Positions 9,778 through 26,715 of a DNA stretch of 43,319 nt are shown here, piece after piece. The notes beneath the pieces were generated by a model. It ran no database searches. It was not told where the DNA came from and was given only the letters and a program-made list of their open reading frames with translations. Positions within the stretch are counted from its first letter, which is position 1. Every line of letters starts with the position of its first letter. The DNA is from Leidyana gryllorum EB-2025a (Eukaryota > Protista > Apicomplexa), in assembly GCA_048772705.1 (NCBI GenBank), contig JBLWGC010000221.1, positions 1-43,319 on the forward strand. Direction: 5' to 3'. The position numbers and the translations under genes were made by a program.

Positions 9778-12770
9778 CTAAGTACGGGCTAATTGAGCTG
9801 GTGAGATCTCCGCCAACAGGTCTTTGAAGGAAGCCGCCCGCAGAGCTCGAGCCATCAAAGCCACGGGCCATTGTGCGTGCGCCAACTTGAGTTGCTGCAC
9901 TCCTCCCGGAATTTGTTCAGTCCTATTGCCCTGAGCGTGCATGTCCCATCTAGACTTGTTCAACAGCAACTTGGTCATCAGTTCGCTCCCAATGCTGCTC
10001 GTGTCATCCAACTCCATGAGCTCCTCAATCAGGGGCTGCAACGCGAACGGTCAGTCAAATGCCGACATCACACCAACCCCGACGACATGGCCACACCCCA
10101 AAGTCGAGCAACACCACTAAACGGACAAGGATGGCTCTCGCCTCACCTGAACTACAAACTGTAGGAATCCACTCTGTGTTTTGGCGTAGGACCGGTGATC
10201 GTGGCGGTCACACAGGGGTGAGAGAGGGAGACCCAACCGTATCTCATCGTCCCCCTGCTGATAGTACTCCTCGCATAACCGTAATGACCATTCCAGGTGC
10301 TGACTCCAATCCAAGCAGGCGTGGCCCAGATCTGCCGCCTTGAAGGCCAATAGCATCACCAATCTGAAAGGCGGTTGGTTTATGCTCTGCTAAACCATCG
10401 GATTCTACTCACTCTCTGTCTTGCGCGTTCCTCACGAGATCGAACTCTGGAGATATTCTCCGTACACGTGACCTCGACAGCATTTCAAAGTGCTTCGACA
10501 TATCGGTCGCCATAATCATTGTCATTATCGTCTTTCGGGCCTGCTGCTTCTCCTCACGACTCAAACACTTGAAGATATTCGTCTCGGGGCTGTCAACAAC
10601 GATCATTTTTCACTTGGGCAGACACACTCGCTTTTTTCTCTCACCACGTAGTAATCACCGTCTGCAGCAGTGCACTATGCGCTGCCTCCAACACTGCATT
10701 ATCATTTTGGAGCATTGCCTGTGAGCGCACGACAGATGGTGGGGTCTGGATGATTGATCACTCACCAGAATGCTGTTGGCATTGATGTAAAAGTTATTGC
10801 TGCGTCCGGGGTGGGCAATGTCGTGGCCGAGGGCAGCGACAATGATAGCGCTCTGCTCGAGTTCCAAAGTGAGGACATCCAAACCGGTGAAGTGCATAAT
10901 GCAGACCACCGCATGGGCGACGTTGGCGGCGTGGATGCCATTGTGGTATGGGTTCTTGGGCCAGTAATGGCGATCGATCATGTGAAGGCATCCCAAAAGA
11001 GTATCAGAATCGACGTCCAGATATTGAATTAGAGGCTGCAACAGAACGGTGCCGACCTCAATGATAATGTTGACCGGATTCTGGCTATGCTGTGGACACG
11101 ATGAGTCAACAAGTCTTCACACACAAGAATCCAACTTACATCGAGGAGTCGGAGATTATAGGTGCGGCCGATATTCCTTTGCATCGATTCTGACATGACT
11201 GGTCTTTTGATCTCAATGCCGTCGACAGTAATGGTCGACCCAATGGTTTCTTTGGCTTTGGGGCTCTCGAGTGTCTCGAGTTCTCCAGCCGCAAATCGTA
11301 CTTGACTGGTCTTGCGAGCACGAGACTCGCGCGTATCCTCCTCTTTGACGGCCAATCCTCCACGTTTGGCTTTGTACATTTCAATGAAAGTCGTCTCAGC
11401 CACACCACCGTCGTCCATGTCCTTCTCGCCCGACCCTTTGCCAGCAGCGCTGAGATCAGCGGCTCCATCGGCTCCACGGGCCAACTTTTTGATGCAGTCG
11501 TCGATGGTGGTGTCAGTCTCGTTGAGGAAGGGCGAGGCGGCCTCCTCCTTTGAGTCCGCCTTGCGGGCAACAACGGCTCCTCGCACTTGTTCCAGCAGGC
11601 CGATGACTTCCTCAGCCGCACTCATTCCCATACGTCGTCGTCGATTCTTCTGGGAGTCACGGACGCGTTTCAGACGGGTCTGACTGTCCCGCACGGTGAT
11701 GAAGACAGCGCGCTCATTCAACTCGCGGAACCAACGGAACAGGAAACCGGTCACATAGAGAACCATACAGACTCCAATGTCGACGATACAGATGGTACGC
11801 ACTTTAGGGTCGTCCACAATGATAATCTGACCGATCTTGGATCCCGAAAACATGAGCAAACACGCGATGTGGAACCAAATGTTATACTTTGTCCTGCGAA
11901 GAGAGAGACCGCGATGTAAAAGAGCGTTGTCGATCACTCACAGGCAGGGAAGAAGGATGTCGACGTGGACGAGCGCGACCAACAGGACGCCCATGTTGAG
12001 GGCGTCCAGACAGATCTTGAGCTCAAGCCAGGCTTTCTGTTGCGCGGGATCCGAGAGATCATTGCTCGACTCGACGTATTCCAGAGTGAAAGTGGTCCAG
12101 ACGTACATACAGAGGCCTCCCTGTGAGTGGTCCACAAAGTTGAGGGGATCGCTCGAAACAAAGCACTCACCAAAGCAGCCAGGACGTAAAAGATGGTCTC
12201 GGCGTAGGGCCGGAACTTCTTGACAAACGCGGTGGACATGATGAAACAGTAAAGGAGAATGATAAAGAAGACCAATCCGTGGAAGCTGCCAATGACAACG
12301 CCGTCGTGAATGTGGATCCATTCTTTGGTGAAGCCGAGTCCATAGGCAATCCAGCAGAAGAGACCCGCGAATAACATAATTCCTGCGCCCACAGGCAGAC
12401 GTAATGGCCATTTGCCCAACTCTGATTCCTGATAGGCCGCCTCAGTCTCCGGGTCGCGGAAGCTCAACGGGAACAGAACTGTGGCCGAGCGTACCGCCAC
12501 CCATGAATTGCCAGCGATCGAGTGCAGCAACATTGTCGGAATGACAGAGGGGTGGACTATCATCTGCAGACACACTCACAAATGGAGAGACCGCGCCTCA
12601 GAGGTACTCACGTGCCAACAACCGACGTCATGATCGAGCTGACTCGCTGATCGACCGATATTCGTCCAAGACTCCGCAGGGCCCGAAACTGTCCTCAGAG
12701 AGGAGGGCTGTTCGGCCTGGGATCGCTTAGAGTGCTTCCTTCCTTTACTCCGCACATCGTTAGTGCTCAT
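9778..12770 (-). CDS. Class I cyclic-nucleotide phosphodiesterase with N-terminal TM helices (copy 1, multi-intron)
   Basis: NPYHNGIHAANVAH, ALGHDIAHPGRSNNF, ATDMSKHF, KAADLGH, EEYYQQGD, TQSGFLQFVV; hydrophobic N-terminal exons. Confidence 0.9.
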
Positions 12771-23803: not shown

Positions 23804-24142
23804 ATGGCACAGCCGTTGTTCAGAGAACGTCAAAATATCCCTCTCGTAATTGCGGATGATTTGAAAGAAGTACATTTACTCAATTTCTCCAAATTGGACA
23901 TCGATCTAAGCACTGAGAAGAAGGGCGCCTTCCTCTATAAGGTCGTCGGTATTGACGGACCCACCCCTGTAGTGCTGCGGGGCAACAAAGAATACGTTGG
24001 CCGCGTGGAAGAGCTCCACCACCCCATACTCGTCACACGAACAGAGAAAGACGCTGAAACGGGTCAGGAGAAGTGTGTGGTACACTCTATCATTAGACGC
24101 AAACTCATGTTCGAGAAGAAGCCCATCTTTCATTTCAACTAG
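23804..24142 (+). CDS. Ctf8-like small beta-barrel protein (TFIIIC triple-barrel subunit is the alternative)
   Basis: GRVEELHHPILV...VVHSIIRRKLMFEKKP resembles the Ctf8 C-terminal pattern. Confidence 0.5.
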   Translation: MAQPLFRERQNIPLVIADDLKEVHLLNFSKLDIDLSTEKKGAFLYKVVGIDGPTPVVLRGNKEYVGRVEELHHPILVTRTEKDAETGQEKCVVHSIIRRKLMFEKKPIFHFN

Positions 24143-26715
24143 AACGCAAATGCAATCTCGTCGTCTTCGGTTTCCTCCTCGTCAGAGAAACAAGGCCATG
24201 CTGATAGCTCTTTGCGTAACATCATCCTCTCCAACATCCACTCCCGCCACCTCGCCACACTCGCGATCGCCACAGCCGGCACCAAACTCCCCAACGCCGC
24301 TCCCCACCCCAACATAACCGCCCACCCGGGCATAGAACTACAAAAACACCCACCCAGTCAACAGCCACACCCCAACAAAACACGACTCACTCTGAAAACT
24401 TGAGTAGCTGACAAGCTGTGCCACGATACTCTGCGTTACAGTGGCAATGCCCGTTCGCGTTGTCACACCTTCCCTGTTTGCTGCACTCTCCGGGGCAACT
24501 CATCCCTGAAGCCGCCGTCATAGCCTCATCTCCGACCCGGGCTGACTTACACTTGACAGAGGGGAGACTGTGACTGCAGTCTGCGCCCCCCCATCCGGGG
24601 CTGCAGATACAGTAGCCATTGTCGTCACATTGTCCGCGGTGCTCAGCTTCACCACAGTTGTTCTGGCATTGAAATTGTACACTCGTTTGATCGTGTTTCT
24701 CTCGAAAACTCGGCCTCGCTGACCTCGCCAGTCAAACACACACACACACACACAACTCACTGTCATAAAAGTCCCACGCGCCTCCCAGAAGCACCGTCAG
24801 CAGGAGGGCGGGTGCCACATAGGTGATCAGCCACCTCGACTTTATCCGCACACCCGTTGCCCGTCTGACGGTTCTTGAGAAGATCTCGAAGCCCGCAATC
24901 TGAGATATCGCCACCAACTCTGCGAAAGGCACCACCAACAGAGCCAATGCACCTAACAATGCCAATGGAGTGAGTGGTGGGACGGAGACAACGGTGGGGG
25001 GTCGAGTTGGAGGTGTGTAGCTTGGAGGAGGCCAGCAGAGGTCCCTCTCCCGTACTCACCTGTGTTGCCATCGAGCAGATCCACCATATAGATCCCCGTG
25101 GGGGATATTAGGGGCGCCGCCAGGACAAAGAGAGCTATACAAAGTATCGCGGCATTGAGTCTTGCGGAAGTAAATCCCTGGAGGCCGAGCTCGTCGATGG
25201 AGATCTGGACGAGATTCAACATAGTCAGGACAGAGCTCAGCCCCAAACTTATAATCAACAGAAAGAAGAGAGATGTGAATAGTTTGGCCCAATTGATAGT
25301 CTCCAGCACAGCCGGGAAGACAACGAATATCAGACCGCTCCCAGCTTGAACCACATCTTCCACCGACGGGACTCCCTGAACCCACGCCACGTGGCCCAGG
25401 AAAGCAAACACAGATAGACCCGCCAGCAGAGAGGTCGCTATGTTCATTCCCAACACTATCCAGGCGTCCTTGGCAAACTGCGGAATGTGTGTGTGTGTGG
25501 GTGTGTGGGTGTGTGGATGGTGTGTGAGGGTGTGTGGGCGTGTGATGGTGTGTGGGGGGGGTGGAGGGTGTGTGTATACATATATATATATAGGATGGGG
25601 CAATAAGTGACTCTCGAGGGCACTCACATCGTTTCTGGGGTCCGAGTAGGAAGCAAAATTGACGAGACAGCCCCATCCGATACCGCAGGAGAAGAAGACC
25701 TGAAGCATAGCTCGCGCCCAGAGCCGGAGACTGAGGAGGTCCTCCAAAGAGGGGATTAGGAAGAACTTGAGGCCATCAAGCGCGCCTGGAAGGATCGTCC
25801 CTCTGATAAAGAGGGCCAAAAGGCCGACCGACGGGAAGAGCGCTGCAAAGGCAGAGATACAGCCGGAACGGGTTACGCCTCCGGAGACAGATATGAAGAC
25901 CAGAAGGCATCCCATTGAGAGACTGAGCAGCAGATAGGGGTTTGTGTCTGATACGTTTGGTTCAGACATTGAGGACGACTTGCGCAGTACGTCGGCCAAG
26001 AAGTACCGATTGGCACTGTCGGCGAGACTGTTTCCTCCGGCGCTCCAGGGGTGTGGTGTCTGCGGTGGAGTTTGGGGGAGGAGTTTGGGGGAGACCGACC
26101 GACCGACCATGAAGGACTCGAAGAAGTAATAGATCGCCCAGGCGTTGATGACTGAAAAGTAGATCGCGCAAATGGCAGCGAGCACCATGGAGCTTAAGCC
26201 CAATCCGGAGAGTCGGGGACTGAAACTGGGCCAGACGCTGCCGAAGGGTGAGGAGGAAGGTCAGTCAGTGGCAGCGGAGGTTTACCGGAGGAAGCTCGCT
26301 TGCAGACACTGTCCGAGACTGAGCTCGAGTTGGTACATCGGGATGCCGATGGCGAAGGCCAAAGTGAGAAAGGCGACCAGAAAGGATCCCCCGCCATTTT
26401 GGTGGCAGACATATGGGAATCGCCAGACAGACGGCAGTCCGACGGCAAAGCCAAAGCAGGTGAGGATGTAATCCAGTCTGGTCTTCCAGCGTGGGTGTGC
26501 GGGGGGTAAGCTGGGGGAGTGCTCGAAAGAGGCGGCGGCGGTGCCCCCTTTGGTGATGACATCCTCGCGAGGGTCGTACCCCGAGACGGCAATAGTACTA
26601 CGAGCGGCGGGGGGTTGGATTATTAGAGGTGTACTCAACAACATTGTGGGGCTCACTGCTCCGCGGGTGGGAAACAACGGATTTCATCAAAGGTGGTCTG
26701 TTGGGATACAGTCAT
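24139..26715 (-). CDS. SLC6/NSS sodium:neurotransmitter symporter family transporter with two EGF-like repeats before TM12
   Basis: RW...[54 protein letters not shown]. Spliced 3' exons give two 6-Cys EGF units then PGWAVMLGW. Start may instead be ATG 26644. Confidence 0.85.
25486..25592. repeat. GT/TA-rich microsatellite within an NSS intron
   Basis: (gt)n and (ta)n; translates as HTHT in the ORF track. Confidence 0.85.

Follow-up and report, generated by a model that had tools for sequence, protein, structure and literature searches.

Few membrane proteins have been studied as thoroughly as the SLC6 transporters, and their outer loops are usually viewed as short connectors or glycosylated flaps. 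Can such a loop house a folded interaction module, and if so, since when and for what purpose? This question is raised by a gene of the gregarine Leidyana gryllorum EB-2025a, located on contig JBLWGC010000221.1 (assembly GCA_048772705.1), of which the whole stretch of 43,319 nt was analysed and is called the window here. The initial annotation of this stretch had proposed that two epidermal growth factor (EGF)-like repeats are inserted between transmembrane helices (TM) 11 and 12 of an SLC6/neurotransmitter:sodium symporter (NSS) protein. We find this arrangement supported by consistent exon phases, by Pfam matches and by collinear relatives, and we find it in six other species.

An SLC6 gene with two EGF repeats in outer loop 6

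The gene lies on the minus strand (26644-24139) and consists of seven exons with a coding sequence (CDS) of 2061 nt, equal to 686 codons plus stop (Table 1). The model was derived from the sequence by six-frame reading, splice sites and exon/phase arithmetic. All introns are of the GT-AG type, the phases (0-2-0-1-1-1-2-0) are consistent throughout, and the CDS closes exactly at a TAG. Exons 1–4 match the Pfam family SNF (PF00209) over profile positions 3–479 of 524, with exon 4 accounting for positions 423–479. Exon 7 by itself gives no Pfam match and aligns with TM12 of the relatives described below. In a profile scan of the whole assembly this gene was the sole SNF locus of the 15.5-Mb genome; exons 1-2 scored 208 bits and exon 3 scored 82 bits, the cut-off being 27. 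Furthermore, exon pieces matched chains of SLC6 structures in the PDB with E values from 1e-16 to 1e-27. The motifs FFS.G.G.G in TM6, N..TS in TM7 and LGL.S in TM8 are all present in the window protein, and the gate Arg and Asp are retained. It has these three helix motifs, membership of the SNF family and the 12-helix LeuT fold in common with the canonical animal SLC6 proteins (SIT1/SLC6A20, B0AT1, GlyT2, the creatine and GABA transporters), many structures of which have been solved. The predicted product is an SLC6/NSS protein (TCDB 2.A.22) with the usual 12-helix LeuT-type core and putative ion-coupled transport.

What sets the window protein apart is outer loop 6 (EL6), between TM11 and TM12. 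In canonical animal SLC6 transporters this loop is short, free of cysteines and without EGF. That it is normally short, as the initial annotation had stated, is borne out by 48 other SLC6 proteins, in which it comprises 8–35 residues (median 11), compared with approximately 96 residues in the window and 99–104 in the gregarine orthologs. The additional length is taken up by two repeats, each having six cysteines in the spacing C-C-C-C-x-C-C and an aromatic-Gly turn before the last Cys, features which are kept in seven species. The second repeat, EGF2, exceeds the Pfam gathering scores for EGF_2 (PF07974; 25.6 bits versus 22.1) and for EGF_Teneurin (PF23106; 25.7 versus 24.3), and when EGF1 and EGF2 are scored jointly, 30.0 and 32.0 bits, respectively, are reached. 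At E <= 0.01, all nine EL6 pieces from the window and its orthologs match the EGF families EGF_2, EGF_Teneurin or EGF_TEN. Outside the clade described below the EGF pattern was found in none of 272 SNF proteins, out of a sample of 283.

A calcium-binding consensus is present in neither repeat. The six-Cys pattern, the C-x-C and the aromatic-Gly turn are common to EGFs of the tenascin, teneurin and integrin-beta type and to apicomplexan surface and microneme EGFs (e.g. EGF1 of TgAMA4). Known tenascin/teneurin-type EGFs occur in single-pass or secreted proteins, whereas the two repeats found here are part of a loop of a polytopic transporter. Since eleven helices precede this loop and the N-terminus is cytosolic in the SLC6 fold, the EGF pair should face either the cell outside or the secretory/endocytic lumen. 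The three GT-AG splices that had been proposed to connect TM11, EGF1, EGF2 and TM12 hold as well. The introns in question (D, E and F) measure 42, 45 and 53 nt, and E and F recur at the same positions and in the same phases in a relative.

EGF domains are otherwise rare in this genome. The only other clear EGF locus found is on contig C230 (469320-469642; L007 1129-2849, minus strand), in a gene with at least four tenascin/teneurin-type repeats following a repeat region that looks, by eye only, like the Kelch type.

Orthologs and the age of the module

Relatives were collected by an exhaustive HMMER search, in which single exons or the open exon 2-3 read-through served as queries and the 150 best relatives were considered. 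Word-index searches hardly detected this clade, with two weak matches for exons 2-3 and none for the EL6 of the Polyplicarium protein. The nearest relatives come from Polyplicarium translucidae and Gregarina sp. Poly1 (EukProt transcriptomes), Vitrella brassicaformis, Cystoisospora suis, Toxoplasma gondii and a Logan contig (SRR31860986_3407, here L012). EGF patterns directly before TM12 were found in four of these.

The two transcriptome proteins are Gregarina sp. Poly1 EP01054_P010528 (P0131) and P. translucidae DN3298 (P0153). Both carry TM11, EGF1, EGF2 and TM12 in one open frame and are collinear with exons 3–7 of the window, including both EGFs and TM12. They are partial at the N-terminus and 42–48% identical to the window protein. 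P0131 ends its TM11 with the same ..DFYD as the window and has an extra Cys-rich stretch after EGF2. L012 is an AT-richer relative with approximately 50% identity. The counterparts of exons 3, 4 and 5 lie there in a single open frame, which runs from TM11 into EGF1 without an intron, and it has two mini-introns of 32 and 35 nt that match introns E and F of the window in position and phase. The lack of the window introns A, C and D in L012 suggests intron gain or loss within gregarines. The L012 introns of 31–35 nt are located at 10793-10823, 11584-11615 and 11731-11765. For annotators of compact apicomplexan genomes, working introns of 42–53 nt, and of 31–35 nt in a relative, are thus documented.

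In Vitrella a single exon encodes TM11, EGF1, EGF2 and the start of TM12. In the annotation this ortholog (L013 10001-13455) is spread over two neighbouring genes, CEM30635.1 with 470 aa and another with 357 aa, which jointly make up one SLC6 protein with the EGF pair.

The coccidian members are T. gondii TGME49_314340 (EPR61205.1, UniProt S7UU11; 1560 aa), annotated as 'Sodium:neurotransmitter symporter family protein', and C. suis PHJ18063.1, both of which belong to the same orthologous clade as the window protein. They are 40–41% identical to the window over exons 2-3 and two to three times longer, owing to low-complexity inserts. Directly before TM12 both proteins have EGF2 and the rear half of EGF1. 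In the models a low-complexity stretch exceeding 300 residues separates the first cysteines of EGF1 from the remainder of the repeat (P0008 ~975-1345; P0007 ~1345-1830); this stretch may be either a real loop expansion or an annotation intron that was not removed. On the Toxoplasma protein Pfam reports SNF only, at E <= 0.01. The identity of the T. gondii locus follows from primer set '314340' in Table S1 of PMC9600588, which maps to the 3' end of the gene. On translation, its forward arm yields the ten C-terminal residues of the protein, with 29 of 30 bases matching just before the stop codon, and the guide and the reverse arm map immediately downstream of the gene. By this comparison two gene models become corrected, the Vitrella gene split in two and the coccidian EGF1 that is interrupted.

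In the alignment all 12 EGF cysteines are conserved across the relatives. The linker between the EGFs measures 10–11 residues in every species; it has 11 residues in the spliced window model and, with intron E retained, would have 26. The Trp of TM12 follows the last Cys at a distance of 11 residues both in the spliced window model and in Polyplicarium, Toxoplasma, Cystoisospora and Vitrella. A Trp from the codon split over intron E was considered as a conserved residue and dropped, as it occupies a different position and is not universal in the alignment.

FastTree trees were calculated for the exon-2 and exon-3 regions of 85–89 SLC6 proteins. The EGF-bearing sequences (six out of six) form an exclusive clade with support values of 0.99 and 0.95, and within it the window, L012 and Gregarina sp. 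Poly1 are joined with a support of 1.0. Collinear relatives, conserved cysteines and linkers, shared introns and the exclusive clade together argue that the architecture is real and ancient. Since the window gene forms one orthologous group with those of Toxoplasma, Cystoisospora, Polyplicarium, Gregarina sp. Poly1 and Vitrella, the module is at least as old as the common ancestor of apicomplexans and chromerids. On these comparative grounds it is of a single origin and not a recent exon capture.

According to the initial annotation no NSS-EGF architecture was known. This still applies to the literature searched: no report of such a combination was found in full texts, and EGF is never mentioned in the papers on apicomplexan SNF-like proteins (PMC9600588, the paper on GEP1 and the list of Plasmodium transporters). 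It does not apply to the sequence databases, in which TGME49_314340, PHJ18063.1, the split Vitrella model and the two EukProt gregarines are deposited. The TM11-EGF-EGF-TM12 architecture is therefore already in the databases and undescribed in the literature searched.

Possible functions of the EGF pair

We assign a probability of about 0.8 to the following reading: the window contains the single SLC6 gene of this gregarine, with an ancient EGF pair in EL6, this pair most likely is a protein-binding handle, and a small solute is carried or sensed by the core. EL6 is enlarged from approximately 11 to approximately 96 residues by two tandem, non-calcium-binding EGFs of the tenascin/teneurin type, encoded in two small exons with three mini-introns. 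The location on the outer or lumenal side would let the twelve cysteines form disulfides. Projecting from the peripheral TM11-TM12 edge, the pair could act as a rigid handle linking the SLC6 core with a partner protein, which would share its membrane or lumen or sit on an apposed surface, while the core might carry or sense its solute. A folded, disulfide-rich interaction module in EL6, kept since before the apicomplexan-chromerid split, would mean that a LeuT-type core can couple directly to an ectodomain.

Several points weigh against this proposal. EGF1 alone stays under the gathering scores, with 18.8 (EGF_2) and 20.5 bits (EGF_Teneurin). Structure prediction, a check named in the initial annotation, was performed with AlphaFold2 (AF2) on the Polyplicarium ortholog P0153 and on the isolated EL6 piece, and here the outcome was divided. 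In the ortholog the core is confident, and so are the helices of TM11 (383-409) and TM12 (509-545) that flank the insert, but over the EGF insert the predicted local distance difference test (pLDDT) score is below 50; the isolated piece yielded four short strands at a low mean pLDDT of 59.6. Foldseek found weak matches to the EL6 model, all of them EGF regions and the best one an integrin-beta EGF (E = 0.014); the ESM Atlas gave no usable match. The constitutive inclusion of both EGF exons is predicted from sequence, the partner of the EGF pair is putative, and the meaning given below to changes in TM1 and TM3 is drawn by analogy from general knowledge of LeuT and SLC6 proteins. Finally, TGME49_314340, one of four 'SLF-like' SNF proteins, showed punctate intracellular staining in tachyzoites (PMC9600588). 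For the Toxoplasma ortholog these puncta do not support surface adhesion, and they count against a simple surface adhesin. The transporter-receptor or adhesion hybrid suggested in the initial annotation is hypothetical.

The main rival to the binding handle is a purely structural or trafficking role, in which the EGF pair has no outside ligand and instead would stabilize or gate the protein, like a lid or brace along the edge formed by TM11 and TM12, control oligomerization, or take part in the control of folding and trafficking within the secretory pathway. The strictly kept spacers between the EGFs and towards the TM12 Trp suggest a fixed geometry with respect to the core. In SLC6/LeuT structures TM12 is peripheral and found at crystal dimer interfaces, a place that would suit such a role. 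The intracellular location of the Toxoplasma ortholog (PMC9600588) is in agreement with it, too. However, conservation of the EGF surface residues reaches only about 40%, the linker ahead of EGF1 is free to vary, Coccidia tolerate the long insert inside EGF1, and tandem EGFs elsewhere are mostly binding modules. A structural role deserves consideration but appears rather unlikely.

The core itself is altered in part of this group. In TM1 the motif GLGN is replaced by GLPS in the window and by GLPT in L012 (L012 10064-10102), and in TM3 YY is replaced by YF in both. Among the sampled relatives the TM1 motif was found in 94, of which 91 have G-x-G-N; GLGN is kept in Toxoplasma and Cystoisospora, and YY is kept in Vitrella, Polyplicarium, Toxoplasma, Cystoisospora and a mollusc SLC6. 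Both motifs are intact in the canonical animal transporters, in contrast to the window. The two changes are common to the window and L012 and not shared by the Toxoplasma, Cystoisospora, Vitrella or Polyplicarium orthologs. We take the Asn of GLGN to be a ligand of the sodium site Na1, as in LeuT and SLC6 proteins, and the second Tyr of YY to be the substrate or gate Tyr; at the Gly replaced by Pro, the substrate carboxylate presumably is bound by a backbone amide, which would be lost with Pro. The replacements in TM1 and TM3 hence suggest that the canonical amino-acid/Na1 site is probably gone in the sub-lineage of the window and L012. The core in this sub-lineage probably has another substrate or functions chiefly as a sensor or scaffold, and among possible roles the loss of these residues would favour a sensor-like one.

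A second alternative takes this further, to a pseudo-transporter or receptor, the core of which no longer transports and the EGF ectodomain of which takes the signal for a sensing receptor or scaffold. The model for it would be SLF (TGGT1_208420) of Toxoplasma and GEP1 of Plasmodium, SNF-like partners of guanylate cyclases (PMC9600588, PMC7145802) and, like the window protein, apicomplexan multi-pass proteins with an SNF-like region. Their partnership with cyclases indicates that the SNF fold was recruited there for signalling rather than for nutrient uptake. The genome studied here encodes at least three two-domain cyclases, and the GLPS/GLPT and YF changes are confined to the window and L012. 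However, the TM6, TM7 and TM8 motifs as well as the gate Arg and Asp are intact, and an interaction between the cyclases of this genome and the window protein is hypothetical. Moreover, the Toxoplasma ortholog of the gene is TGME49_314340 rather than SLF, which is reported to be absent from gregarines (PMC9600588). Orthology to SLF or GEP1 (PF3D7_0515500) was not found: the 150 best relatives include neither of them, and the Toxoplasma protein closest to that of the window is 314340, with no SNF gene next to its locus. By analogy with SLF and GEP1 a receptor remains conceivable, yet we regard it as unlikely.

A more specific version, quite unlikely in our estimation, would be a eugregarine 'transceptor' in which the Na1/amino-acid site was dismantled and the EGF ectodomain and the mobile LeuT core were kept. 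A host or parasite protein bound by the EGFs might then be read out via the core, possibly to cyclic-nucleotide signalling, in which other apicomplexan SNF-like proteins take part. Under the binding-handle reading favoured here, the EGF pair offers a testable handle on the uncharacterised TGME49_314340, in a family whose paralogs partner guanylate cyclase.

Splicing of the EGF exons

The three introns flanking the EGF exons have the strong donors GTGAGT, GTAAGT and GTGAGT, a branch-like TGAC box 12–19 nt before the acceptor, and the acceptors CAG, CAG and TAG. We searched both strands of the window for the pattern GTRAGT..TGAC..YAG with a length of up to 65 nt and compared the result with 200 dinucleotide shuffles. 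Six matches were found versus 2.4 +/- 1.6 in the shuffles, and three of the six fall on the coding strand inside one stretch of 423 nt, that of the EGFs. The chance of three matches clustering there is estimated at approximately 3e-7, with correct phases not yet required. With a broader pattern (up to 120 nt) the window was no richer than the shuffles; only the short-intron pattern is informative. Intron D has a second in-frame acceptor at 24701 (GAG), the use of which would trim the variable linker by 6 residues; the CAG at 24719 is preferred.

Are both EGF exons always included? They could be used alternatively, which would yield isoforms having just one EGF or an extended linker. By phase and length arithmetic exon 5 (168 nt, 1-1 symmetric) can be skipped in frame, and the 45-nt intron E has no stop and a frame-0 read-through that is open, so that it could be retained in frame. 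Against this, both EGFs and the linker of 10–11 residues are present in every relative, the transcript-derived ones included; retention of intron E would create an odd 13th cysteine and a linker of 26 residues; and in L012 and Vitrella, both lacking intron D, the link from TM11 to EGF1 is obligatory. Regulated inclusion is therefore regarded as distinctly improbable.

The initial annotation had named two outcomes that would speak against the insertion, and the sequence comparison favours neither of them. The first was use of an upstream acceptor followed by a stop at 24518. This candidate (acceptor 24682, frame-1 open reading frame) was rejected, as the frame has neither a Pfam match nor conservation. 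The second was that the EGF exons belong to a separate mRNA. Ahead of EGF1 there is no start codon in the EGF frame, and the mRNA-derived frames of P0131 and P0153 are continuous. Extremely improbable, finally, is a mere artefact of the gene model, with the EGF frames representing an independent small gene, a decaying remnant or Cys patterns arisen by chance and the transporter ending after TM11 or joining TM12 directly: the gene model of this genome is predicted from sequence, and EGF1 alone falls short of the Pfam threshold, but a direct splice from TM11 to TM12 that skips both EGF exons is out of frame because the donor is in phase 1 and the acceptor needs phase 2, an EGF start codon is missing, the other frames and the opposite strand at the EGF region have no Pfam match, and the order TM11-EGF-EGF-TM12 recurs in six other species, twice inside one exon, so that the comparative data largely refute this possibility.

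Organization of the locus

The coordinates of the gene and its parts are compiled in Table 1.

Table 1. Exons and introns of the SLC6/SNF gene described in the text (positions in the window)
Feature	Position	Strand	Length (nt)	Content and remarks
Whole SLC6/SNF gene	26644..24139	-		ATG at 26644; TAG 24141-24139; Pfam SNF on exons 1-4
Exon 1	26644-26286	-		N-terminus, TM1 and TM2; TM1 motif GLPS (~26452-26414)
Exon 2	26237-25628	-		TM2-TM6 region; TM3 motif YF (26161-26156; Phe 26158-26156)
Exon 3	25477-25060	-		TM7-TM9/10 region; N..TS (TM7) and LGLSS (TM8) retained
Exon 4	24952-24761	-		End of TM10, inner loop 5 and TM11; closes with ..DFYD plus one base (phase 1)
Intron D	24760-24719	-	42	GTGAGT..(GT)9..TTGAC..GTCAG; in-frame TGA
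Exon 5	24718-24551	-	168	1-1 symmetric; variable linker and EGF1 (six-Cys box 24668-24576)
Intron E	24550-24506	-	45	GTAAGT..ATGAC..TTCAG; phase 1; 8 codons past last Cys of EGF1
Exon 6	24505-24391	-		EGF2 (six-Cys box 24497-24411) and 6 codons
Intron F	24390-24338	-	53	GTGAGT..TTGAC..GTAG; phase 2; 6 codons past last Cys of EGF2
Exon 7	24337-24139	-		TM12 (P.W....GW..AL.S...P motif, assigned by alignment with relatives), acidic C-terminal tail and TAG

Two of the introns contain simple sequence. The (GT)9 microsatellite of intron D extends over 24753-24736, and intron B (150 nt) has a long CA/CCA-rich tract at 25600-25485.

Upstream of the SLC6 gene lies a gene for a 2OG-Fe(II) oxygenase (2OG, 2-oxoglutarate; AlkB-like) with its stop codon TGA at 26721-26719. 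The ATGs right after this stop run into stop codons within 10–20 codons. As no ATG in frame with SLC6 exon 1 precedes the one at 26644, the intergenic gap amounts to approximately 75 nt and not to zero. For a neighbouring protein of the window an exact look-up gave no match among public records. On the other side a convergent gene is located on the plus strand (23804-24142), with a weak match to Ctf8 (E = 0.0026). Its stop codon and that of the SLC6 gene share the palindrome CTAG; due to this overlap of the stops the 3' ends of both convergent genes must overlap each other's coding sequence.

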